In this document: in pieces, positions 1,633-64,000 of the stretch
Layout of the letters: each line of letters begins with the position of its first letter
How positions within the stretch are numbered: position 1 is the stretch's first letter
Assembly: GCF_001194135.2 (NCBI RefSeq)
Contig: NC_068981.1
Coordinates: forward strand, 152,792,061 to 152,856,060
Reading direction: 5' to 3'
DNA length: 64,000 nucleotides
Source: Octopus bimaculoides
Lineage: Eukaryota
Position numbers and translations under genes: made by a program
Notes under the pieces: generated by a model
What the model was told of the DNA's origin: nothing
What the model saw: the letters and a program-made list of their open reading frames with translations, nothing else
Database searches by the model: none

Positions 1633-2730
1633 TTAGAAGAAGTATTCATTCCAGTGGTCAAAGTGGTTCATGTAACGACCATTCATATCCATCCACTGAC
1701 CTCCAAAATCCATTTGATAATTGGACATATCAAACCATCTATGGCCTCCAGAGAAGTAAGGACTGTAATTGAAGTAGTGGTACCTGCTGTGGTAATTATA
1801 GGGAGACATTGAATGGAATTCATAATCCATATCATACCATCTCTCTGGGTTATTGTAGAATCTTTGGCCCCAGCTGTAGCTATGATAAGGGTAGTAGTGG
1901 TGATATCTGCCATGATAGCTGTAGAAGGGTGTGCAATGACGGCTATACATATCCATCCAGCGGCCATCAAAATCCATTTGATAGTTTGTCATATCAAAGT
2001 ATCTCTCTGGGTAGTTGTAATATCTTTGGCCCCAGCTATAGTTATAATAAGGATAGTTATGGTAGTATCTGCCATAGTTGGTGTAGAAAGGAGTTGAATG
2101 ACGACCATACATATCCATCCAGCGGCCATACATGTCCATCTGATAGCCGGACATATCCATGAATCTCTCGGGATAGTGCATATAGTAGAAATTCATGTAT
2201 GGATAATACATATAACGCCTGTAATAGTTGTAATAAGGGTTGCACTGACGTCCATATCTGTCCATGTATCGGCCATACATGTCCATTTGATAGTGGGACA
2301 TGTCCATGAATCTCTCAGGATAGAACCAGTTACGACCATAGCGGTAGCCAGGGTAGTGGCCATGTCTTGAAGAGTTGAACATATACCAGTAGGGACTGGA
2401 GTGGTGTCCGTGCATGTCCATCCATCTTCCATACATGTCCATCTGATAACTGGACATATCCATAAACCTCTCTGGGAAGTCCATGAAATTACCATATCTA
2501 TGGAACCTATCGTTATCATAGAAACCGTAATAGTTGTACATAGATTTACCATAGTATCTATCATTGTCAGAATATCTACCATAGAATTCATAGAATCTGG
2601 GATCTACCATTCTTCCATAAGAATCCATGTATCTGCCTTGAAAATCCATGGACATCACGCTCATTGGTTCCATGATTCCTCTGTATTTTCTGCCGAAATG
2701 ATGACGGAATTTGTTCATAAGACGGTTCAT
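1633..2730 (-). CDS. Reflectin (cephalopod structural-colour protein), 365 aa, uninterrupted coding exon
   Basis: N-terminal motif MEPMSVMSMDFQGRYMDSYGRMVDP (nt 2673-2599). Five full repeats of PER(F/Y)(M/F)DM(S/T)xYQMD(M/F)xGRWMD type (the last begins HRWFDMSNYQMDFGGQWMD) plus one degenerate PERWYDMD. Composition dominated by Y/M/R/G/D/H/N. ATG at 2730-2728, TAA at 1635-1633. Confidence 0.97.
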   Translation of the reverse strand: MNRLMNKFRHHFGRKYRGIMEPMSVMSMDFQGRYMDSYGRMVDPRFYEFYGRYSDNDRYYGKSMYNYYGFYDNDRFHRYGNFMDFPERFMDMSSYQMDMYGRWMDMHGHHSSPYWYMFNSSRHGHYPGYRYGRNWFYPERFMDMSHYQMDMYGRYMDRYGRQCNPYYNYYRRYMYYPYMNFYYMHYPERFMDMSGYQMDMYGRWMDMYGRHSTPFYTNYGRYYHNYPYYNYSWGQRYYNYPERYFDMTNYQMDFDGRWMDMYSRHCTPFYSYHGRYHHYYPYHSYSWGQRFYNNPERWYDMDYEFHSMSPYNYHSRYHYFNYSPYFSGGHRWFDMSNYQMDFGGQWMDMNGRYMNHFDHWNEYFF

Positions 2731-14435: not shown

Positions 14436-14785
14436 CGGCCAAGGAAGCTTTTTGATCCCATTTTCAGTCAGCCATTGTTGATTCCTTTTCGCTGTGTGGC
14501 ATGAAGCCCCATCTTCTATGAATTAAAATTCACTTTTCGTAATGTTATCGTGTGAATACATTGGAAGTAGTCCTTGCTTAAGTATTTCGAAGTGTTTTTC
14601 AGAGTTTATTGTTCCAACACATTCGATCAACTCAGAATGATCGTTGCTGGTGATAGCTCCCCATACCATTACAGAGATACTGCCAGGTTTCACAGTTGGT
14701 TGGAGTCGTCTCAAATCAAATTCTAGATTGGGAAACCTCCAGACCCAAACATGTCCACTGTCTGAAAATAATGCAAATCTGGATT
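14436..14785 (-). mobile_element. Tc1-family transposase fragment (DDE region)
   Basis: Minus strand translates ...FSDSGHVWVWR...QPTVKPGSISVMVWGAITS...GTINSEKHFEILKQGLLP...EDGASCH..., typical of the Tc1 catalytic domain. Bounded by N gaps. Confidence 0.85.
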
Positions 14786-17282
14786 NNNNNNNNNNGATTG
14801 CCCAACAATACGACCTCTTTGAAAATCTGACAGTTCTGCTGAATTATTTGTGCGTGGCACGGTTACTCTTCGAAAATGTTTAATATAATGACACCTGGAA
14901 TGAAAAGGAATAATTACATTGTAAATTCTACACCGCTGAAAACATATTAAGACGCTTAGATCAGAAATTTTGAAAATTAAAGGTGTCTATTTACTTCTTG
15001 CATGCCTGTGTATGTACATATCTACATATATATGTATATATACTTGCATATATGGGTACAGGGCGTCAAAAAACGTGAACAAAATGAAAAAGGAACATGT
15101 AGGTATGTACATATATGTATGTACATATGTTCGTTTTCCATGTTTTTGTTGTTTTTTTATGTTCTCGTTTTTCATTTCTTCACGTTTTTTTAATGTTCTA
15201 TACCCATATATGCATGTATATATACAAATATATGTAGGTATGTACATATATGTATGTATATATGCATATATATATATTATTTATATTATTATATGATCGA
15301 ACGCCACGCATCCATTTCCTAGTAAGTTTTATCTTAATAATTCAGATGCGCACTCCACACTCTCTATTCTCCCTTCGCTTATTCTTCTTTCTTTCTGTTT
15401 TTCTTCTTCCCCCCTTTACCGTTCTCTTTCTCTCCCTCTCTCTCCCTTACTCTTCCCCCTTGACTCTGTCGTTGCTCACACGTGACCAGCGGCTATCGTT
15501 CTTTTTTCCTCTTGCTTTACAAGAAATATGACCTACTTTTGCCTGTCTCTTGTCACAGCTCCTTTCTCCAGCGTTCACCACTTCATCTCGTTATGGCTTA
15601 ACAGCCCTCACCGCTTGTTTTAACTATTTTGTTCTTACTGTCCTGTTTTTGTTACCACTTTAACCCTCCGCAAAAATCCCAAATTTTATTTAATTTGCTT
15701 TGCGGGAAGGACTGTTTTAACGAAGTCACGTCTTGTCTTAACCTTCGAAATGCGGAATAGATAAAACAGGGAACAGCTAATGAAGAGATTGTTCTTTATG
15801 TTGCCTGTCTCGTTTCTNNNNNNNNNNNNNNNNNNNNNNNNNNNNNNNNNNNNNNNNNNNNNNNNNNNNNNNNNNNNNNNNNNNNNNNNNNNNNNNNNNN
15901 NNNNNNNNNNNNNNNNNNNNNNNNNNNNNNNNNNNNNNNNNNNNNNNNNNNNNNNNNNNNNNNNNNNNNNNNNNNNNNNNNNNNNNNNNNNNNNNNNNNN
16001 NNNNNNNNNNNNNNNNNNNNNNNNNNNNNNNNNNNNNNNNNNNNNNNNNNNNNNNNNNNNNNNNNNNNNNNNNNNNNNNNNNNNNNNNNNNNNNNNNNNN
16101 NNNNNNNNNNNNNNNNNNNNNNNNNNNNNNNNNNNNNNNNNNNNNNNNNNNNNNNNNNNNNNNNNNNNNNNNNNNNNNNNNNNNNNNNNNNNNNNNNNNN
16201 NNNNNNNNNNNNNNNNNNNNNNNNNNNNNNNNNNNNNNNNNNNNNNNNNNNNNNNNNNNNNNNNNNNNNNNNNNNNNNNNNNNNNNNNNNNNNNTATATA
16301 TATATATATATATATATGATCTCAAAAAACGCAGTGCAATTACGACCATTTTCAAATATCCGAAGTAGGTTGTCACTAAAAGCTCCTATTTTCTTCGCCA
16401 ACAATACCCTGCATGGAGGACTAATTCTTTCTCTTATGATTCTCCAGGATGACATGAGACATGTGCAGTAGGTAATTTCCAGTATAGTTTCAAGCTTTTC
16501 GTGTTCAGATAAGAAGAACCATAAAATATTACAGATCCAACCGCTACGTAGGAAAAGTTTACATTCAGATTATCTGAGAATTTAGATTTCCATATGCTGA
16601 GACTTAAGTGCTGTTTAGCATTTGCTGATACATAGATTAACCCCCTGACTCTCTACATACTATGTTGCTCCCGAGGTTCCTAAAAATACCTACCCTTTAA
16701 AATAATAATGAAGATTACGTTGATTACTAAACCCTAATGTTAGATGCTATTTTAAAAGTTACTACATTACTTCACTGTATGGAAGATGACGCATAGGATT
16801 AAGGCTAGACAAACGGAATTCATTGGATACAACTTAGTGTGGCTTTGATAACACTGCTCGATCGCGTTCAGTTTCTCATCGTATTATTAGCGTTCTCTCT
16901 ATATTGAATAATATGTACATTCAAATAGATATAAGTCATAAAAATATCAAATAATTAGTAATGGCAGTAAAAATTTTAAAATATAACGTAATGACTGGTT
17001 TAATGTGAAGGTTTGAATAATACTTTATAAACGAGTCAAATGAGGAAAAGGAGAATGGTGAGGCGTAGCGAACATTATCATTGCCGGTTCTCCCAGACTG
17101 GTGAGATTGATGTGGTTGATATTCAGTTTGAACATATGTCCACGTCAATTTTCTGCAGGAAAGAAACCACGAGCAAAGTGAATGGCTCAGGTGTATAGTT
17201 TGAATGCTTGCAGACAAGTTAATTAGGCTAAAGTCATCAAAGAGCCAAGTATTGATGTTAAATTGGAAGAAAAAAGTAAACA

Positions 17283-21821: not shown

Positions 21822-22839
21822 TATATANNNNNNNNNNNNNNNNNNNNNNNNNNNNNNNNNNNNNNNNNATATATATATATATATATACATACACACACGC
21901 AAACACACACACATACACACACACACATATACATGCGCAGGTTTGTTTCCATGTATTTATGTATGCGTATATATATATGTACACATGTGTAAATATATAC
22001 ATGATTATATAGAGATCGGGAGAGAGGGAGAGAGAAGGAAAGAGGGAAAGCGGTGAGAGGAAACTGCGTTGGCGATCACTTTCGAAGTCTTTTCTCTAAC
22101 AATAACATTAAACAGAAGCTACAATCAATGTCAGAACTGTTGTCTTTATTTGGAGAATTTATTTAATTTATCTTAAACACAGTTTTGGATCCAGTAATTT
22201 TGCTACTATTACCGTTTGTTAAAATACCGAATTGAGAATAACAAATCCTAATCCATGATACAGATATTTTTCGAAATCGTAAATCATTTCCGGTGACTTC
22301 AACTGTACATAATTTATTTGTTTATTTATTTTTCAAGGTCTCTTCAATAACAAGAATGCACCAAGTAAACTGTTAATAATAGAATGGAAATACAGTATCA
22401 ACGTTGTGTGGCTGCGGCCAGCATCGTAAATCATCAGGTAAACTCCTATTGAGTTGCATGCTGGTTCTGTTTCCTACTCGGAGCCAATTCTCTTTACTTT
22501 CGTTGATAATATCCTTATAGAAAGTATCAACACTCTACCTCGCCTCCCTTTCTCCCACAATCAACTTAAGGCTTTTTGCCTCTTAGACGTCTACATAATG
22601 GTCAGTTAAAACGTTGCCAAATGCAACTAAAGATAACTGTAAGCTGGTTTCATGACAAGATTTCAGTTCCCTCTTATTTCACTTCTTCGCACAACTAGTT
22701 AAACCTATTAGAAAAACGACTCTGAAACTTACGATTTCAATTTTACTTTCCCAATAGATATTGAAAAGATTGTGAACGTTTAAGAAACTAATTTTATTTG
22801 ATTAATACATGATTTCACAAAATATTGAGGTCCATTTTA

Positions 22840-24060
22840 GTAACTTCCCTCACCTACCATCCCTCCACCTCCGGCGATTCCAGTCCCACCCCTCCACTTC
22901 ATACATCTTTCCCAAGCTACCCCTTCGCTCCTTCAAACGAGCCCACAACCTACGTGACCTCCTGGTCCACAGTTTCTTCCCTAACCCCACCTCCCAACCT
23001 AGCTCGTTCCCCTGCTCTCGCCCATGCTGCCGCACTTGGCCCTATCTCTCCAATACCACCATCCTCACAGACACTCATCATCGTCCCTATCGTATTACTG
23101 ACTCTATTACCTGCACTTCTAGCAACGTCATTTACTGCATCTCCTGCTCTTTCTGTGCTTCTCTATACATTGGTCAAACGGGACGCCGATTGGCTGACCG
23201 GTTCGCGGGGCACCTACGAGACATTACACTCGGCAATGACACCCTGGTCTCGCGCCATTTTTGCTCTACCGGTCATTCATTACAGCACCTGTCTGTGTTC
23301 GGATTGTCTTTGCACATGGACTATCCGGACTTCCGCCTTCGTCGTGAACAAGAATTAATCTTCTCTCTTCGCTCCTTTGCTCCACATGGGCTCAACTCCC
23401 CTCTCCTCTCTTACCATGGCACCTGCTTCCTCTCTTTACTCCTACCCACCTTCTCCCTTCATTGATACCCCTCCGTCCACACCCCGCCCCACATCCTCAC
23501 CCTACCCCCACATCCTCNNNNNNNNNNNNNNNNNNNNNNNNNNNNNNNNNNNNNNNNNNNNNNNNNNNNNNNNNNNNNNNNNNNNNNNNNNNNNNNNNNN
23601 NNNNNNNNNNNNNNNNNNNNNNNNNNNNNNNNNNNNNNNNNNNNNNNNNNNNNNNNNNNNNNNNNNNNNNNNNNNNNNNNNNNNNNNNNNNNNNNNNNNN
23701 NNNNNNNNNNNNNNNNNNNNNNNNNNNNNNNNNNNNNNNNNNNNNNNNNNNNNNNNNNNNNNNNNNNNNNNNNNNNNNNNNNNNNNNNNNNNNNNNNNNN
23801 NNNNNNNNNNNNNNNNNNNNNNNNTTCTTCCTAACTCTCTTGTCCAACTACCTTTTTCCAACCAGTCATCATGATTGACCGCTAAATCCACAATTTAAAA
23901 AAAATTCTTTCGCTCTTTATATCCTCGTGTTCGTTTCTGTTGAAGAGCGTAGGCTCGAAATGTAAAAGACTTTCTCACATTCCCGAGCGTCAAACTAATA
24001 CACCTGCTTGTTGTTTATACACATGTCTTCATCTTTTGTTTTTCTGTAAATTTCAATTAT
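22840..24060 (+). mobile_element. Penelope-like retroelement 3' fragment with GIY-YIG endonuclease
   Basis: ORF 22809-23465 contains FKRAHNLRDLLVHS, CTSSNVIYCISC...YIGQTGRRLADRF..H, RHF and EQELIFSL...PHGLN. Pyrimidine-rich tail and a pseudo-LTR-like end at ~23930-24060. Interrupted by an N gap. Confidence 0.9.
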
Positions 24061-25739: not shown

Positions 25740-25821
25740 ATGAACACTATCCTTAAGTACTTCTCGAAGAAAATGTCAAGTGAAACCAAGCCTATGGCAA
25801 ATGAAACCAAGCCTGCTGAAG
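25740..25821 (+). CDS. Possible alternative first coding exon (MNTILKYFSKKMSSETKPMANETKPAE) of the transglutaminase gene
   Basis: Exon-like unit 25708-25821: strong acceptor ttttcttttccattttatttcatAG, ATG at 25740, consensus donor GAAG|GTAAGC in phase 1. In frame with the acceptors at 55286 and 60707, but not with 52126. No homology support. Confidence 0.35.
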
Positions 25822-26476
25822 GTAAGCTAATGTTTATATTTCTACTAACAAGCTAGTGTTTGTTATGTTTCTACTAACAAGTCAGTGCTTGTTATGTTTC
25901 TACTAACAGGTGAGACGAGAATGTGAGATGGTGCAGAAATGAGAGATGGTGCAGAAATAAGACAACAACGTATGTTGAGGAGACAGCTCGTAGCATAGGG
26001 GAGCGGGAGTTTAAAGAGGAGAAAAGCTCGTCCGTGCTCTATCAACATGATCAATTAGTATATTGAAGATCGGTTGATAACATAAATGTTCAGGCATTAT
26101 CAGCGCATAGAACAAACACGATACTGAGACAGATTAGAGAAGCCACACAGATTGTAATAGACAGACCTAGCCTCAGTAGAAAACAAGAATGGAACAATAA
26201 CTCCCTCATTATCACACTACGCGACTAAATGTAGAGTGGAATGAAAACAAAAGAGACACAATTACAAACAGTATAATACATAAAGCCATACACACACACA
26301 CACGCACAAAAGACACACGTACCTAAGACGAAATCGAAAAAGAAATAGAGAAATTAATAAGTAAATAAAAAAAACTAAATAAAGGGCGCGAATACAAACA
26401 GTATAGTAAGGAAACCCATATACACACACGCAAAACACCAATACAAAACACATAGACAAGCATGCACACACGTACA

Positions 26477-29497: not shown

Positions 29498-31699
29498 AAG
29501 GATTAGAGTTTAATTTTGAATTAAAGATAAGTTGAAATACATAACAGTTGCTATTGGTATATATTTCAGAATATTTCGGTCGCTTTTTGCATTATTTTGA
29601 ATCAAGTTGCTTTCTTCGTGTTTAATGCCTTTCTTTTACACTTCTACATATACCCATATATATACATACATGCATACATGCATACATACATACGAATGTA
29701 CACGCACACACATTTAAATACATGTGTGTGTGTGTATGTATGTACATGTATGTGTGGTCACGGACAGATTTATTACATGAATAAATATATTAACGTTCAG
29801 ATTACTGTATATTTTTATTTGTTCACGTGATATTTAAAAAAAAAGAATTTTTTATTTTTGAATTAAACATAGTGTATAAAAGCGACATTGTTTAATCCCA
29901 GGTCATCTTTATCGAACATTCCTATAACGAGAAGTGTTCCTCCTGTGATCACCCATTCTTTTCCATATTTAGGAAGGAAGTGTTGAATATGTCTTTCTCT
30001 TCGTTAAGAGGGATTTGACTGCTATTCCTAGAAAATAGAGCTATCACATAGAATCCATCCCGTTGATACGTATTAGATATATTGTAGGGCAGTTTTCACT
30101 GATTTATCACTGGCTAATGTAAACCGATATGATTCAAGGTGTTTCTAAATGTATTAAATTATGTTAGATAGTTTAACCAGTGTTATTTATGGAAAGGAGA
30201 AATTTTCATTACCACCGCCGATTTTGTATCCACGGTTAATCTTATTATATCATTTAAATTACGGCAATTATATCATTAGAATTACGGCAATTTCCAAAGA
30301 TCATCAAGAAGAGGGACTCGCCCTCAAATGGCTGTGTAGACTGATCCTTTACGCTATAAGGCTTTTCTTTCTACCTATGATTAGTAGTTTTAAAAGTTAA
30401 GTCATTTCGCACAATGCGATTCCACTATTTAGATTTGGAGGTCTGATTACAGAGGCTACGCAGGCTAAGACGGCTGTATTGACCAGCAAGCTGTAGCTTT
30501 TACATTGATCTTCCAAGTGAATTGCCTTAAAGGGATAGAGAACTCCACCTAGCCTGAAGTTACCCGGAAGAGAGTCAAAGAGGGCACCGAGCCGCCTAGT
30601 TTCACTTCTTGATTTGCTGTTAATGTTGACACTCTTTTCCCAGGACACTCACAAGGTAGTGAGCTTTGTACTTGAAGTTTCTTCCTTAAAATGCTAATTT
30701 AATCATAGATGGGACCCTAATAGGTGCTACTACTCCCGATCAGAGTAGAGCTGGGAACAATGGTAGCTAAGAGTTGGTTCCACATCTCCTCAAAACCATG
30801 GAACTCCCGAACCAAGGCCTCGGATGCAGTTTAAAGTCATACCCAGGATTAATAATTTAAATCTAGTCCTAATATAGCTACAGTTAATAAAGTATTTTTA
30901 AAATGTACGTTCTCATACACACATGCACACATATGGTTTACTTAGATGGTTGTTTTTGGGAGGGTCCGGTTGTGCCATACACACACACACACACACAAAA
31001 GACACACGTACCTAAGACGAAATCGAAAAAGAAATAGAGAAATTAATAAGTAAATAAGCGAGTTGGGGTTTAGTCAATTATATCGATTCCCAGTACTTGA
31101 TTGATAATTTATTTTATTTACTCCAAGAGGATAAAAGGTAAAGTTGACCTCGGCGGTATTTGTGCTAGGAACATAAATAGATCGAACAAATGCCGTATAA
31201 TATTTTTTATCGAACGTCTAACGATTTTGTCAGCTCGTAATCTTTTACTAATACTTTTGAAATAATTTAATATATTTTACAACTGTACCTTGAAGTCTTC
31301 ATAATCTTTTTCTCAATCCACGTCAAATTTAACTTTATGTTGCAGACGCTTTAGAATTAAAAAGCAGTTATGGGTTGTGGTTTCTACCTCACTTTCTTCC
31401 CGTTTTAAAGAGACCCAATAAAGTCATTGGCGTTGTCCTTTCTCTGAGTAAAAGCCATTAACAAATCTCCAATGGGTTACATAGCACCTGTTGAGTGTTA
31501 AAGTTTTTTATTGCTTCATATGTATTCATAGTCATATATAGGGTTCGAGATACAGTCGTAACTCAAATCCTACCATGAGGTGAAACAATTTGCAGAATAT
31601 GAAAGTTTTAGTGAAATTATATTTATGACATGAGACGACGGACGAAGGTTGCAAATTGACTCAACCAGCATCTCAAAAGTAGCGAAAGGTCCCGCCTAA

Positions 31700-32760
31700 A
31701 AACGACACTGATGGAGATTGAAAAAAGGCTGCAACAATCCTATGTGAGGGAGAGAGCAGACAAAGAAGTCTGGGTTATAAAAAACATTAAGTCAAACGCA
31801 AAGGCCTTTTTTCATTACGCGAAAGAAACAGCCTCAGTACGCTGCAAGATAGGACCCCTCTTCGAAAAGGATGGCTCCCTCACAGAGAGTCCAACTAGGA
31901 TCAGTGAGGTACTGAATGACCAGTTCAAAAGTGTCTTCACCACCCCGTTGGAACACAGACAAGTGAATGAACTAGTGGAATTCTTTGCCATCTCCCCTAT
32001 AACCAGCGAGGCAGTTACGATGGAATACATCGACATTAGCGAAGATGTACTACTAGCAATAGATGAAGTGGACACAAACTCAACTGCTGGTCCTGATGGT
32101 TTCCCAGCAATCCTCCTCAAATCGTGTAAGCATGCTCTGGCAAAACCCCTCCAGATTCTCTTCCAGAGCTTTCTTGCAAATGGCAGACTGCCAAGCAACA
32201 AAGAAGATTGTCTCTTTGCAACTGCTCAGCTACTGGGAAAGGCTGAAATAACTAAGACTCTGCTAGAGAAGGCGGGAGAAGTATGCAGTAATATACATCT
32301 GGAAGATCCTGGAAGGAATTGTGCCAAATTTTAGCATTGAAAGTTACACCAGTNNNNNNNNNNTCCTGGAAGGAATTGTGCCAAATTTTAGCATTGAAAG
32401 TTACACCAGTGCCAGAACGGGACGACACTGCATAGTGCCAAAGATCCCAGCAACACGATCGCGCTTCAGGACCAGTTACTGCAACAGTTTGATTTTCAGG
32501 GGCTCACAACTTTTTAATATTCTCCCAAAGAGCCTGAGGAACCTGCATAAAGTAGATGTAGGTGTTTTAAAATCAAAGCTGGACCTCTTCCTGTCGAGAG
32601 TCCCAGATGAACCTACCTCACGGCAAGAGGTGCAAATGAAGGTAGCTACATCAAACTCCATTCTTCACCAAGCACCACATATTGGAGGAGGCTCTCAGTA
32701 ATAACAGTGTAGCAAAACGGCGGTGCATCAGCATGGCCGCAGCTCTGAGCTGAAACTAGA
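31700..32760 (+). mobile_element. CR1-clade LINE remnant (internally deleted ORF2)
   Basis: IKSNAKAFFHY, LNDQFKSVFT and AGPDGFPAILLK...LAKPLQILFQSFL..G.LP (pre-RT region) joined to a CR1-type C-terminus (LFNILPKSLR...KSKLDLFLSRVPDEP). The RT core is missing. Confidence 0.85.
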
Positions 32761-52125: not shown

Positions 52126-52231
52126 ATGGACAAACGCCATCAACAAGGAAGCACAGACCGTCTTAAACACTGGCCTTTTCTCAACTATTTTAACCGATCC
52201 CGAAACATGCCTCCTGTCTGCCCCCCACCTG
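52126..52231 (+). CDS. Predicted first coding exon of the reflectin-motif transglutaminase (MDKRHQQGSTDRLKHWPFLNYFNRSRNMPPVCPPP)
   Basis: Preceded by acceptor ttcctattttgacttcAG directly before the ATG. Ends cct g|GTTCGT (phase 1), matching the phase-1 acceptor at 55286 (G+AC=Asp). Pro/Met tail resembles the next exon. The donor is weaker than the others. Confidence 0.55.
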
Positions 52232-55285: not shown

Positions 55286-55499
55286 ACACAAGCAGCAAAG
55301 ATAAGAAAGATCCTATGGGGAGAATGCCGAGGGGAAATGTAAGACATTTTGGTCCCCCCTTTATGGGTCCGCCCATGCCAGGTGATGGTTTTGAAGGGTT
55401 TCCACCACCACCACCTCCTTGTGCAATGAATCCTCCCCAAACGAGAAAGAAAAAAAACGCCGAGAAAGAGCGCTTGCAGGACGTGGAAGGCGAACCTAG
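55286..55499 (+). CDS. Exon of transglutaminase N-terminal extension: Pro/Met/Gly-rich then basic/acidic (DTSSKDKKDPMGRMPRG...PPPPPPCAMNPPQ...EGEP)
   Basis: Acceptor gatattcttccAG (55284-55285), donor AG|GTGATT (55500). 214 nt, phase 1 in and phase 2 out. The 138-nt intron rejoins in frame (AG+A=Arg) to the next exon. Confidence 0.85.
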
Positions 55500-55637: not shown

Positions 55638-56209
55638 ATATGAGGATAATACAGAGAAACGACCTAAAAGCCCGGCAGCGACGCAGGAACGAAAATCGGA
55701 GGCCAAAGAAAAGGATGTAAGAGAACCCAGGCAAGAAAATCACCATAACAGAAATGATCCCTGTGACAAACAAAGTGATGTTGGCAGTCAACATCGAGAT
55801 TCTTCTGCTTTTGACACTGAATCAAAGTTTTCGGATTTAGAGAAGAGTAATAGATTTTACCCTTATCCAGAATTCGACAGGCATGGTATGATGCCTCCAT
55901 TTGGTATGATGCCTATGGGTTACGGTCCTCCTGACGGCATGAGACCTCCAGTGTATATGAATTATCCAGAAAAGCCTGTAGATATGTCTCGCATGACAAT
56001 GGATTTCGAAGGCAACTACATGGACAATAATGGACAATTCATGGATCCCTTAGATATGCAACAGCATAACGAAATGGATCTTCCTAGGGAGAATATGAAC
56101 TTCCGTCCTCCATATATGGACCAATTTCATGGAGATATGGATGGTTGTGTGGATATACCTCCCATGGAAATGAAACGTTACACTCAAAGACGGAAAGATG
56201 GGTTTGATG
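55638..56209 (+). CDS. Exon carrying a reflectin motif (YMNYPEKPVDMSRMTMDFEGNYMDNNGQFMDP, 55954-56049) in a charged then Met/Pro-rich segment
   Basis: Acceptor gtattttcttAG (55636-55637), consensus donor G|GTAAGT (56210-56215). 572 nt open, phase 2 in and phase 1 out. Motif is 13/22 identical, without gaps, to the N-motif of the reflectin at 2730-1633. Confidence 0.88.
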
Positions 56210-56390: not shown

Positions 56391-56980
56391 NNNNNNNNNN
56401 NNNNNNNNNNNNNNNNNNNNNNNNNNNNNNNNNNNNNNNNNNNNNNNNNNNNNNNNNNNNNNNNNNNNNNNNNNNNNNNNNNNNNNNNNNNNNNNNNNNN
56501 NNNNNNNNNNNNNNNNNNNNNNNNNNNNNNNNNNNNNNNNNNNNNNNNNNNNNNNNNNNNNNNNNNNNNNNNNNNNNNNNNNNNNNNNNNNNNNNNNNNN
56601 NNNNNNNNNNNNNNNNNNNNNNNNNNNNNNNNNNNNNNNNNNNNNNNNNNNNNNNNNNNNNNNNNNATAGTAGAAAGAATTATTATTATTATTATTATTA
56701 TTATTATTTTAAAAACAGTTTGATACAGCACCATGTAACTTAAAGTTTCTTAGGCTAGTTACAGGAACCTAGCTCGTCATGCTCAGAGGACGAGCTAGGT
56801 TCTCGCGATGAGCCTACGAAACCTTAACCCTTATAGGGTCGAATCAAACGGTTTTTTTTTTTAATAATAATTTATATAACTCCTACCAAAAGTGTTAAGG
56901 GTCTCTTACTTTCGCTTGTCCACTTACTCGTATGTATGTATATATGTATGTATGTATGTATGTATATATGTATGTATGTA

Positions 56981-57033
<53 letters not shown>

Positions 57034-57183
57034 NNNNNNNNNNNNNNNNNNNNNNNNNNNNNNNNNNNNNNNNNNNNNNNNNNNNNNNNNNNNNNNNNNN
57101 NNNNNNNNNNNNNNNNNNNNNNNNNNNNNNNNNNNNNNNNNNNNNNNNNNNNNNNNNNNNNNNNNNNNNNNNNNNNNNNNNNN

Positions 57184-59064: not shown

Positions 59065-60441
59065 CAGGGGTTGGACAAAATAATGGAAACACCTAGCATC
59101 ATAGCATCATAATTTTGAAATATCTATAAAACCGTCAAAAACTTGTTTACTTTTATGTCTTTTGATTTATTATTAATGTTGCTTAATATGTTTCGTTAAA
59201 ATTGCTGTTTCTTTTCAGATATCATCAGAGAAAGGTAATTAAAATTCATTAAAATGTCAGATCTATCGGACTTTCAAAGAGGTCAAATTGTTGGTGCTCG
59301 TATGGCAGGCGCTAGCGTAACGTAAACAGCCAAAATGTTTCGTGTATCAAGAAGTACTGTCTTGAAAGTAATGACAACCTTTGAGAAAGTGGCAAAAACA
59401 TCCTCGTCGAAACAAAACTCCGGAAGAAAACTAAAGCTTTCAGATAGGGACCGTCGGACTCTTACGCGAATTGTTAGAAAGGATCACAAAAGTACAACTC
59501 CCAAAATTACTGCAGAGCTTAATGACCACCTCGAGAACCCAGTTTCNNNNNNNNNNNNNNNNNNNNNGCTACAACCAGAAAACCATTACTTTCAAAAACA
59601 AACGTTGGAAAGCATTTAGAATGTAGTAAAAACCTACATGATTGGTTCCTAGAGCAGTGGAAGAATGTTATTTTCTCGGACGAGTCATCCTTTACTTTAT
59701 TTCCAGCCACCGGCCGAGTATACGTGTGGAGACAGCCATAAGATGCATTTGACCCAGACTGTCTTCTTCCAACTGTTAAACACGGAGGAGGATCTGTGAT
59801 GATCTGAGGGGGGGGGGGCTATATCTTGGAAATCCGCCGGCCAAATGGTTTCCCTTCATGGCAGAATTAATAATTAAGACTATTTAAGCATTTCATCTGA
59901 TCAAATTCATCCCATGGTTGCGGAACTGTTTCCGGAGAGAAACACAATCTTTTAGGCTGATAATGCACCAATTCACACAGCTAAAGCTGTTACTGAATAG
60001 CACGAGTGAAGTTGAACATCTAGTGAAGTTGAACGTCTAGTGAAGTTGAACGTCTAGTGAAGTTGAACATCTAGTGAAGTTGAACATCTAGTGAAGTTGA
60101 ACATCTAGTGAAGTTGAACATCTAGTGAAGTTGAACATCTAGTGAAGTTGAACATCTTATTTGACCACCACAGTCCCCAGATCTCAATATTATTGAACAT
60201 TTATGGTGCATTTTAGAAAAACAATTAAGGAGTCGATATCATCCACCATCATCACTTCAAGAACTGGAGACTGTTTCAGCTGAAGAATGGACAAAAGTTT
60301 CTTTGGAAACAATTCAAACTTTGTATGAATCCATACCTCGTAGAGTTCAAGCTGTAATTACTGCCAAAGGCGGTTCTACCCAATTTTAAAATTAATTTGT
60401 TTGAAATTTTAAAGTGTTTCCATTATTTTGTCCAACCCCTG
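59065..60441 (+). mobile_element. Tc1-family DNA transposon, full length but inactivated, in the intron between the reflectin-motif exon and the first transglutaminase-domain exon
   Basis: Perfect 28-bp TIRs CAGGGGTTGGACAAAATAATGGAAACAC (59065-59092 / 60414-60441) with TA on both sides. Transposase from ATG 59254 (MSDLSDFQRGQIVGAR...) with FSDES, DNAPIH and PPQSPDLNIIEHLW motifs and internal stops. Confidence 0.96.
60005..60157 (+). repeat. Tandem repeat, 9 x 17 bp (AGTGAAGTTGAACATCT), inside the Tc1 transposase
   Basis: Nine contiguous copies counted directly; copies 2 and 3 carry an A>G variant. No spacers. Confidence 0.95.
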
Positions 60442-60706: not shown

Positions 60707-60925
60707 AGATGAGTCCTCAAGAACTCATGGAAAATGGAATGCTGATCGTTACTCACGTCGACTATCACTTGGATGAAACTTTGAGGCTTCATCACACTGA
60801 CCAATATGATATTGGCCAGAATGGTCAACTGATAGTTCGACGTGGACAACCATTTATGTTGACTATTGAATTTCATGAAGAATACAACGAGGAGAAACAT
60901 AAGATAAGATTCATCTTCCAAATTG
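60707..60925 (+). CDS. Transglutaminase N-terminal beta-sandwich domain exon (MSPQELMENG...HHTDQY...LIVRRGQPFMLTIEF...FQI)
   Basis: HHT.xY and L(I/V)VRRGQPF are hallmark motifs of the transglutaminase N domain. Acceptor attattatttttcAG (60705-60706), donor G|GTTAGT (60926). Phase 1 to phase 1. Confidence 0.93.
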
Positions 60926-61143: not shown

Positions 61144-61392
61144 GTGAACACCCTCTACCATCAAAGAAGTCTGACATCAGATTTGGCCTGACCGACAAAT
61201 GGTATCCAGAAGAATGGGGAGCAAAATTGGTGTCCAGGAGAGGCAGAATAATTACTGTCTGTGTTCACCCTGCTTGTGATTGTATTGTAGGAGTGTGGGA
61301 TTTTATGATTAAAACTACAGTAAGCGGTAAAGGAAGCTACATTTTCGACAATTTTGAGCAAATCTACATCCTCTTCAACCCTTGGTGCCAAA
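61144..61392 (+). CDS. Transglutaminase exon (GEHPLPSKKS...WGAKL...CIVGVW...IYILFNPWCQ)
   Basis: Conserved P.PSK, CIVG.W and YILFNPWC motifs. Acceptor tttgtttccatAAG, donor A|GTAAGT (61393). 249 nt, phase 1 to phase 1. Confidence 0.95.
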
Positions 61393-63421: not shown

Positions 63422-63543
63422 CTGATCAAGTATACATGGAAGATAAAGACCTCCTCTATGAATATGTGCTAAATGACCATGGACACATATTTCAAGGAAG
63501 CGGATGTTCTTCCGTTTACCAGAAACCCTGGAATTATGGGCAG
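63422..63543 (+). CDS. Transglutaminase exon, start of catalytic core (TDQVYMEDKDLLYEYVLNDHGHIFQGSG...KPWNYGQ); gene continues beyond the window
   Basis: Conserved D.VY, EYVLN..G.I..G and PWN.GQ motifs. Acceptor ttattctttccAG, donor CAG|GTATGC (63544). The catalytic GQCWVF Cys lies downstream and is not in the window. Confidence 0.95.
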
Positions 63544-63716: not shown

Positions 63717-64000
63717 ACAATTAAACCTTGGGAGAGGCATTATGCCAGTAATAAACACACGCACTGGTTCAGTCCTTTATTAATTTATATAGTTTTTTGT
63801 TAAATTATTTCATTGCACTCTTGCAATCTCCTTAGTAACTTGTCTCTCCACTTCCATTTATTTAAGTGGAGAGACAAGTTACTGAAGAGATTGCAAGAGT
63901 GCAATGAAATAATTTAACAAAATACTATATAAATTAATAAAGGACTGAACCAGTGCGTGTGTTTATTACCGGCATAATGCCTCTCCCAAGGTTTAATTGT
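63717..64000. repeat. Near-perfect foldback palindrome (arms 63717-63853 and 63864-64000, 10-nt loop); may extend past the window end
   Basis: 137-nt arms with 4 mismatches by manual comparison; loop CCATTTATTT. Confidence 0.95.

Follow-up and report, generated by a model that had tools for sequence, protein, structure and literature searches.

The 64-kb stretch of Octopus bimaculoides DNA analysed here (assembly GCA_001194135.2, chromosome CM046601.1), called the window below and used for all numbering, carries a single-exon reflectin gene and, some 50 kb away, six exons of a transglutaminase (TG) gene, one of which (exon B) contains 96 bases encoding a reflectin-type motif, YMNYPEKPVDMSRMTMDFEGNYMDNNGQFMDP (Table 1). 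Reflectins, whose origin is debated, are regarded as an orphan family confined to cephalopods and made up of small, single-exon genes. We hold, with a probability of about 0.85, that these 96 bases are a genuine reflectin-type repeat situated inside a conserved, disordered N-terminal extension of a transglutaminase, a statement that covers both the identity of the motif and the architecture of the gene around it.

The motif and the gene that carries it

The motif has the exact MD-X5-MD-X5-MD spacing (VD-MSRMT-MD-FEGNY-MD-NNGQF-MD-P, 55981-56049), with a VD preceding at the same interval, and conforms to the pattern [M/F]D(X)5MD(X)5MD(X)3/4 by which the reflectin family is recognized. As the initial annotation of this DNA had proposed, its left half resembles the internal repeats of the neighbouring reflectin (YMNYPEKPVDMS against YMHYPERFMDMS of the repeat at 2184-2089, with eight of 12 residues identical), and its right half resembles the N-terminal motif of the same protein (MSRMTMDFEGNYMDNNGQFMDP against MSVMSMDFQGRYMDSYGRMVDP at 2673-2599, 13 of 22), both alignments being free of gaps. 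The Smith-Waterman score of the 32-mer against the neighbouring reflectin is 78, while 5000 composition-preserving shuffles of the 32-mer score 31.5 +/- 5.1, with a maximum of 59; with the shuffling restricted to the Met/Asp-rich half of exon B, the score of 85 compares with 42 +/- 7.4, and again none of the shuffles (0/2000) reaches the real value. The similarity is thus far above what composition provides, which the annotation had named as the way its comparison might fail. A phmmer (HMMER) search with the whole of exon B against 1.84 billion proteins likewise finds reflectins and reflectin-like proteins, the best being an O. bimaculoides-type reflectin (E 2.7e-15), with a Sepia reflectin at E 1.5e-8 and two spurious repeat proteins also among the matches; taken with the shuffles, this is similarity to the reflectin family beyond composition. 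Pfam holds no reflectin model, and exon B, the reflectin and the proteins P0002, P0007 and P0008 discussed below have no meaningful match in it.

The likeness at the DNA level to which the annotation also pointed is visible, but shows no excess over that dictated by the shared amino acids: six of the 10 degenerate identical residues use identical codons, where codon usage leads one to expect 4.5. Codon matching at expectation tells against a recent conversion by the neighbouring reflectin gene, and the synonymous sites bear no sign of recent exchange with it. One might still seek to explain the resemblance as a by-product of Met/Asp/Gly-rich composition, given that the exon B region is compositionally biased, or as the result of gene conversion from a reflectin gene only 53 kb off. 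The shuffles, the phmmer E-value and the codon counts all speak against such an origin, as does the fact that the motif has closer matches in the long reflectin-like proteins of squid than in any reflectin of O. bimaculoides, and we consider it refuted, with next to no probability left.

The six exons in the window have canonical AG/GT boundaries and form an uninterrupted frame of 494 aa that is 97.4% identical to the Octopus vulgaris model OctVul6B023351P1 and 72% identical to the N-terminus of its Argonauta argo counterpart. The spliced TG exons 1-3 match Transglut_N (PF00868, E 1.7e-27, profile positions 2-113 of 114), their nearest solved relatives being factor XIII A (E 5.5e-26) and TG2. 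Ahead of these exons lies an N-terminal extension of ~297 residues encoded by three exons (P 14.5%, D 9.8%, K 6.7%, E 6.7%), which is disordered in character, with its high proline content and no Pfam domain. The core of the first coding exon (exon 0), W-P-x-x-x-YFNRSR-x-MP, is kept in Argonauta and Euprymna, and since an acceptor-like ttcag stands ahead of 52126, a 5' untranslated exon probably lies further upstream. Exon A stands out from its flanks in G+C content (GC 0.50 versus 0.27-0.35) and has homologues in the O. vulgaris, A. argo and Euprymna scolopes gene models and, with identical splice phases, in the comparison locus L003; it joins exon B in phase. Exon B is part of a 203-codon open frame (P ~4e-8 from local base composition), the GC of which is 0.42 versus 0.27-0.32 in the flanking introns. 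Its donor is in phase with TG exon 1 (G+AG = Glu), which is itself 98.7% identical to that of O. vulgaris. The in-frame junction, together with an O. vulgaris model in which the identical junction leads into a full transglutaminase, bears out the annotation's assignment of the motif to a transglutaminase gene. TG exon 1 has an ATG after its first two bases (60709), at a point that corresponds in alignment to where TG2 naturally begins, so that an enzyme without the extension could arise from an internal start or an alternative promoter.

The wider distribution of the gene can be read from Table S1 of Armendarez et al. (bioRxiv 10.64898/2026.04.14.718489), a list of 141 'reflectin' sequences, several of which are in fact this TG fusion gene. 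The two O. vulgaris models, OctVul6B023351P1 and P2, read ...EGEPR/YEDNTEKRPK...YMNYPEKPVDMSRMTMDFEGNYMDNNGQFMDP...RRKDGFD/EMSPQELMENGMLIVTHVDYHL... (a slash marks a splice junction), with the junction to the TG part at RRKDGFD/EMSPQELMENG, and run on through YGQCWVF, FHVWNDVW and VDPTPQE, the contexts of the Cys, His and Asp of the catalytic triad; the contexts GQCW, FHVWNDVW and DPTPQE are shared by the orthologous models. The fusion is present as well in E. scolopes (Esc_cluster_14373p and 12890p), in Architeuthis dux (pred2_34325.1) and in A. argo (Aargo020157), and the exon B-TG junction is identical in the O. vulgaris, A. argo and E. scolopes models. One further entry of the table, Esc_cluster_13228p, is a fragment of an ordinary transglutaminase in which no reflectin motif can be seen. 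Isoform P2 of O. vulgaris begins with a different first exon, MYTILKYFSKKMSNKTMPAE, for which the window offers no convincing match, only a weak one of 59% at 25740-25826.

Genomic comparison was made with two loci, L003 (ENA ERZ21867824) and L006 (ERR12921340), which look decapodiform by sequence, as does SRR27666076. In both, exon B agrees with the window in the position of its acceptor and in having a phase-1 donor directly behind the frame, and between the two species its ratio of nonsynonymous to synonymous change (dN/dS) is 0.19 (bootstrap 0.10-0.32, dS ~0.9). The conserved splice phases and this low ratio mark exon B as a selected internal coding exon. The physical link between exon B and the TG exons was not recovered in a second genome, as L004, which has the TG exons, ends 2.9 kb upstream of exon 2, L003, which has exon B, ends 4.1 kb downstream of it, and TG exon 1 is on neither. 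A metagenome scan for more orthologous loci found none.

Several points weigh against the gene structure proposed here. The catalytic Cys-His-Asp core lies beyond window position 64000, and the splice junctions have been placed from signals in the DNA and from orthologous gene models, a part of them computational predictions. When the exon B peptide, the TG exons and the exon B alignment were used as queries, word-indexed protein searches returned almost nothing from cephalopods and no annotated O. bimaculoides model; because these searches also missed most molluscan transglutaminases, their silence says little. Of the 18 runs of N in the window (e.g., 56391-56666, 57034-57183, 59547-59567), three fall within the intron of 4.5 kb that separates exon B from TG exon 1, where a very small extra exon may be hidden, although the orthologous models have none. 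It might accordingly be argued that exon B stands outside the transglutaminase, as a separate upstream reflectin-like gene or a dead reflectin fragment: the joining in O. bimaculoides is predicted from genomic DNA and from the models of other species, the open frame ends right behind the donor (GGT AAG TAG), and the transglutaminase has an ATG of its own. Against this stand the phase-1 donor kept directly behind the frame in three genomes, the dN/dS of exon B, the in-frame junction with TG exon 1, the lack of any other conserved exon between the two, and the joining of both parts in the gene models of four other species, so that we regard a separate gene as highly improbable. The particular variant in which exon B is a terminal exon, with the stop behind the donor ending the protein, was rejected, since three genomes share the donor and it is used for splicing in the orthologous models.

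Table 1. Features of the window (positions in bases from its first letter; a slash marks a splice site)
Feature	Position	Strand	Particulars
Single-exon reflectin gene	1633..2730	-	365 aa; N-type motif 2673-2599, five internal repeats
First coding exon (exon 0)	52126..52231	+	MDKRHQQGSTDRLKHWPFLNYFNRSRNMPPVCPPP plus 1 base; donor G/gttcgt; tblastn with O. vulgaris model, 92% identity
Exon A	55286..55499	+	Pro/Gly/Met-rich and Lys-rich, DTSSKDKKDPMGRMPRGNVRHFGPPFMGPPMPGDGFEGFPPPPPP...EGEP; acceptor ccag/AC, donor AG/gtgatt
Exon B	55638..56209	+	Reflectin-like, 190 full codons; acceptor cttag/A, donor G/gtaagt (phase 1)
Decayed N-type motif remnant	55639..55719	+	(R)YEDNTEKRPKSPAATQERKSEAKEKDV; start of exon B; fixed-register comparison
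Pro/Gly/Met-rich lead-in	55852..55953	+	RFYPYPEFDRHGMMPPFGMMPMGYGPPDGMRPPV; aligns with the MEPMSMRYMDPGRFGMPME region of L003 and L006
Reflectin-type motif	55954-56049	+	YMNYPEKPVDMSRMTMDFEGNYMDNNGQFMDP; lead-in 55963-55989, RMT 55990-55998, core MD-X5-MD-X5-MD-P 55999-56049
Second, degenerate motif	56098..56163	+	NFRPPYMDQFHGDMDGCVDIPP; one MD-X5-MD spacing kept; read from sequence; conserved in O. vulgaris and A. argo
Transglutaminase exon 1	60707..60925	+	E-MSPQELMENGMLIVTHVDYHLDETLRLHHTDQYD...; acceptor tttttcag/AG, then ATG AGT; start of Transglut_N domain
Transglutaminase exon 2	61144..61392	+	Pfam Transglut_N; orthologous exon in L004, 70% identical
Transglutaminase exon 3	63422..63543	+	TDQVYMEDKDLLYEYVLNDHGHIFQGSGCSSVYQKPWNYGQ; gene runs on past window end

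The intron between exon B and TG exon 1 also holds a fragment of a DDE-type (Tc1/mariner-like) transposase at 60165-60386 (+ strand; Pfam DDE_3, E 1.9e-5, below the gathering score). Elsewhere in the window, long open frames at 31660-32698 (+), 22806-23462 (+) and 14526-14843 (-) are mobile-element remnants by the look of their sequence, with no Pfam match at E <= 0.01.

Motif class and the question of a single ancestor

The initial annotation described the motif as a hybrid of the two reflectin motif classes, that is, the N-type motif (the N-terminal reflectin motif, RMN) and the internal repeats (the reflectin motifs, RMs). Mean BLOSUM62 scores by class agree with this description. Positions 1-9 score 25.6 to the internal repeats and 1.7 to the N-type motifs, positions 10-12 (RMT) score -2.5 and 11.0, respectively, and positions 13-29 score 45.2 and 61.0; over positions 10-29 as a whole, the N-type motifs score 72 and the internal repeats 43. 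Features of both classes are therefore combined in this motif, but the layout is not unique to it, being the rule in a set of long reflectin-like proteins. The closing DP, which the annotation held to be lacking from internal repeats, is indeed lacking from those of the neighbouring octopus reflectin, but terminal repeats of Sepia, Euprymna and Doryteuthis reflectins end ...GRYMDP. The exact RMT match to the N-type motif is confined to Octopus, Argonauta having RLT and the decapodiforms R[FY]T. All seven TG-type motifs, for their part, read TMDFEG (55999-56016), with Thr in place of the Gln of canonical repeats (YQMD) and Glu in place of the usual N-type Gln (MDFQG). Two squid proteins of ~100 aa in Table S1 (entries 24 and 105; Doryteuthis pealeii Dopeav2126409m and A. 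dux pred2_34310.1) have an N-type motif that reads MDFEG like the TG motif; their tail is non-reflectin (...DDYESRL.LYTGMN.DFHDNFE), making them another non-canonical member of the family.

Compared without gaps, the TG motif scores best (90-99) with motifs of P0002, P0008 and P0007, the best-matching groups being the internal motifs of the long reflectin-like proteins and the motifs of the orthologous transglutaminases, with canonical repeats reaching at most 84 and canonical N-type motifs at most 64. The long proteins are P0002 (1103 aa, a single genomic open reading frame at 10001-13312 of L002) and P0008 (1270 aa, at 152-3964 of L005, a sequencing-run assembly contig). Each has a Pro/Met/Gly-rich N-terminal part, five tandem motifs of the hybrid class (e.g., FPERYMDLSRYTMDFQGRFMDTHGRYVDP) and an acidic, coiled-coil-like tail, with no Pfam domain, and stretches near-identical to them occur in Table S1 as a D. 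pealeii entry and as E. scolopes Esc_cluster_2805p. The TG motif likewise unites, in one unit, the PE[RK] lead-in with R-x-T-MDF-[QE]-G...[VIFM]DP. Judged from these alignments, a third motif class, PE[RK]xxD[ML]S-R[FYM]T-MDF[EQ]Gx[YF]MDxxGxx[VIFM]DP, is common to the TG exon and the long reflectin-like proteins. As its bootstrap value is only 0.07, it is not a supported clade and is better thought of as a grade than as a proven lineage.

It had further been suggested that the motif may preserve a single ancestral unit from before the N-type and internal motifs diverged. The decapodiform orthologues speak to this directly, as their exon B opens with a separate, good N-type motif (e.g., RYDGHMECMSKMTMDMQGRYIDSQGRFVDP, with 67% identity to the N-terminus of reflectin beginning at codon 1 of the exon), and the hybrid motif follows ~100 residues on. 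With an N-type motif, degenerate repeats and then the hybrid motif, the decapodiform exon is like a mini-reflectin, while in octopods only the hybrid motif is intact. O. bimaculoides has a decayed remnant where decapodiforms have the intact N-type motif: in fixed register, the start of octopus exon B shares six to eight of 28 residues with the decapodiform N-type motifs (P <= 3e-4 against shuffles). An unrooted neighbour-joining tree of 56 motif units over 29 columns separates the N-type motifs of reflectins and TG from the TG hybrid, long reflectin-like and canonical repeat motifs with a bootstrap value of 0.99, canonical repeats forming a clade of their own with weak support (0.60). The decapodiform N-type motif, the octopus remnant and the 0.99 split together indicate that the separation of N-type from internal motifs had taken place by the time of the last common ancestor of exon B and the reflectins, and in its strict form the idea of a single ancestral motif fails. 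In a weaker form it survives, the TG motif belonging to the least-diverged internal-type class. The mean distance to the N-type motifs is 0.56 for the TG class, 0.61 for the long reflectin-like motifs and 0.70 for canonical repeats, a pattern that fits a less-derived internal motif, as far as an unrooted tree of short sequences can indicate. The TG motif is, on this phylogenetic reading, internal-type by descent, and of an internal class that has diverged least from the N-type. In the motif-level phylogeny that the annotation had envisaged, the motif groups with the internal motifs and is not nested in a recent reflectin subfamily.

Age, linkage and direction of origin

Seven species from both coleoid superorders have D-[ML]-S-R-x-T-M-D-F-E-G-x-Y-[ML]-D with hardly any variation. 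Because the fusion occurs in Octopodiformes and Decapodiformes alike, it is older than their split. A late capture from a recent reflectin subfamily, the outcome that the annotation had set against an ancestral state, is at odds with the retention of motif and splice sites in Octopus, Argonauta, Euprymna, Architeuthis, L003 and L006; the motif is ancient and not a recent capture.

The reflectin in the window is identical to Ocbimv22031000m of Table S1 (bioRxiv 10.64898/2026.04.14.718489). In A. argo, by gene number, the TG gene (Aargo020157) comes directly after a reflectin cluster (Aargo020153-6), so that, with the arrangement seen in the window, the linkage of TG and reflectin genes is conserved among octopods. 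Architeuthis gene IDs 34310, 34311 and 34325 are close together, and the Architeuthis genome paper places reflectin and 'reflectin-like' genes on one scaffold.

How the two came to be joined can be argued in either direction. In the coleoid stem lineage, an older transglutaminase gene may have taken up, as an exon, a reflectin without introns or a tandem duplicate from the cluster beside it, a reading to which we give not quite an even chance. Transglutaminases are ancient and reflectins are cephalopod-specific; the TG gene abuts a reflectin cluster; N-type and internal motifs were already distinct; and the decapodiform exon B is like a reflectin frame shorn of its first ~15 codons, homology (KYRGIMEPMS versus RYDGHMECMS) beginning at the first exon codon. 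Such a capture would, however, have to be accompanied by the gain of the non-reflectin-like exons 0 and A, and it sits less well with exon motifs of a less derived class that are not nested inside canonical reflectins. Those same motifs, as the internal class nearest to the N-type, are what one would expect if the reflectin genes instead arose from a duplicated TG exon that acquired a promoter and a start codon of its own and then multiplied in the immediate neighbourhood. A fusion as old as the crown coleoids is compatible with that reverse course, as are the linkage kept in Octopus and Argonauta and the gene order suggested for Architeuthis. It is nonetheless the less likely of the two and, taken by itself, unlikely, for the tree is unrooted and has one well-supported split over its 29 columns, nothing in exon A corresponds to MNRxMNRF..., the N-terminal sequence specific to reflectins, and proteins of the P0002/P0008 type are as good as the TG exon as candidates for the 'old' reflectin state. 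Our slight lean toward capture comes from the decapodiform exon, a reflectin frame in which only the first ~15 codons have been lost to the splice acceptor. In the published proposal (Guan et al. 2017, as cited in PMC9779258 and PMC9259870), reflectins originated from a transposon of Vibrio. A bolder conjecture would put the TG exon in the place of the bacterial transposon, as the source of reflectins or their closest surviving sister, through a local exon duplication in the coleoid stem, with the enzyme still acting on reflectin assemblies by way of its reflectin-type tag; we think this improbable.

Possible function, novelty and comparison with known systems

Transglutaminases act on protein-bound Gln, and a reflectin-type segment on such an enzyme suggests a possible targeting mechanism. 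The Met/Asp/aromatic motif would serve as a reflectin-compatible 'sticker' by which the enzyme joins in the assembly of reflectin condensates or platelets, or associates with itself, and Ca-dependent cross-linking or Gln deamidation would thereby be placed where reflectins are packed. The Thr and Glu of TMDFEG, found in all seven orthologues at the positions of reflectin Gln, would spare the enzyme's own motif from modification; for a Gln-modifying enzyme, mimicry of the deamidated product is an alternative view of the same residues. An enzyme lacking the extension could also be made, by translation from the ATG at 60709 or through the use of other first exons. In reflectins themselves, it is the motifs that bring about phase separation and an assembly regulated by charge (bioRxiv 10.64898/2026.03.13.711711).

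That the motif should tether the enzyme to assemblies of reflectins, or make it self-associate, is, in our estimation, a tentative proposal with odds clearly short of even, and a number of considerations tell against it. It presupposes that the enzyme is expressed where reflectins occur and that it meets them; reflectins are Lys-poor, so that Gln-Lys cross-linking among them is not an obvious reaction; and reflectin linkers do not share the richness of the extension in Pro, Lys and Glu. The N-terminal extensions of factor XIII A and TGM1 serve activation or anchoring, and extensions of this kind are common in the transglutaminase family. The cephalopod extension may similarly be an ordinary regulatory, pro-peptide or anchoring region, its motif an evolutionary leftover retained for purposes that have nothing to do with reflectins, such as self-association or autoinhibition. 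The alignment of the ATG at 60709 with the start of TG2, which makes the extension an add-on, would agree with this, as would the decay of the N-type motif in octopods and an overall composition unlike that of reflectins. The motif has nonetheless been kept with great precision, near-invariant in seven species of both superorders and within an exon under selective constraint, and it retains exactly the MD-X5-MD-X5-MD spacing that defines reflectin assembly motifs, which leads us to think a purely regulatory extension somewhat less likely than the tethering proposal, and rather unlikely in itself.

The sequences are public and the gene is not a new one. What appears to be undescribed is a conserved coleoid transglutaminase with a reflectin-type domain of an intermediate class, lying beside a reflectin cluster. 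Literature searches pairing transglutaminase with reflectin or reflectins gave, by title or abstract, nothing on cephalopod biology, and no paper describing an enzyme fusion was found; the main text of the catalogue that accompanies Table S1 (bioRxiv 10.64898/2026.04.14.718489) does not mention transglutaminase, exons or introns, and lists the fusions as 'reflectin sequences'. As enzyme fusions already figure in 'reflectin' catalogues, they need to be set apart before any statistics on motifs are calculated. A selected reflectin-type domain on an ancient enzyme, present in both superorders and linked to the reflectin cluster in octopods, provides a concrete locus for the origin debate: it bears on how reflectins arose, the motif as single ancestor not being demonstrated. 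Likewise, an enzyme possibly recruited to reflectin condensates and modifying them covalently is an idea that reflectin biophysics has not considered, and such modification may offer a way to approach what separates static from tunable reflectors.

Measured against the canonical reflectins (Crookes et al.), the TG motif shares the MD-X5-MD-X5-MD spacing, the PE[RK] lead-in of the RMs and the SRMTMDF.G.YMD..G...DP core of the RMN; the similarity is significant by HMMER, and the TG gene is a chromosomal neighbour of the reflectin cluster. The differences lie in the surroundings. Canonical reflectins are small, stand-alone proteins of a single exon with four to six motifs, joined by cationic linkers that are rich in Arg, Tyr and His and have little Lys or aliphatic residues, whereas the TG extension has one intact motif and one or two degenerate ones in Pro/Lys/Glu-rich surroundings, the usual reflectin Gln residues of the motif are replaced by Thr and Glu, and the motif sits in the third coding exon of a multi-exon enzyme gene. 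Of the features by which a reflectin is known, the extension thus lacks the several repeats with cationic linkers, the stand-alone, single-exon gene and, in O. bimaculoides though not in decapodiforms, an intact N-type motif.

The long reflectin-like proteins stand closer, having the same motif class (FPERYMDLSRYTMDFQGRFMD..GR.[VI]DP), the highest gap-free scores to the window motif (83-99) and Pro/Met/Gly-rich flanks; they differ in their five tandem motifs within one large open reading frame, in their acidic, coiled-coil-like tail and in having no enzyme domain. The octopod orthologues in O. vulgaris (97%) and A. argo (72%, N-terminus) have the same exons, junctions and motif, and the decapodiform ones retain the intact N-type motif at the start of exon B that octopods have lost. 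Reflectin C of D. opalescens (A0A088MRL7) offers another parallel, in that a Pro/Gly/Met-rich stretch is followed, in the same order, by a single aberrant motif, although it is a small stand-alone protein whose motif, RRYIDRHDRSMDMPYGRYMDMPQGRY, is different at many positions. Reflectin C has been described as having a proline-rich GMXX region and one poorly conserved RM, with no close homologues (bioRxiv 10.64898/2026.03.13.711711). In collinear local alignment, which pairs its GMXX region with the Pro/Gly/Met-rich stretch and its aberrant RM with the TG motif, it scores 78-84 with the TG extensions, where shuffles score 46-53 +/- 8-9 and three to four in 1000 reach the observed score, a similarity that is marginal and partly compositional. 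The suggestion that exons A and B are the octopus reflectin C was dropped, the similarity to the real reflectin C sequence being no more than marginal, though the weak collinear similarity and the want of a described close homologue suggest that reflectin C might derive from the lineage of the TG exon. Among the transglutaminases, finally, the activation peptide of factor XIII A and the anchoring region of TGM1 are, like the cephalopod extension, lineage-specific, non-globular N-terminal additions before the catalytic body; the cephalopod version differs in running to ~297 residues and in carrying a motif from a family of structural-colour proteins.

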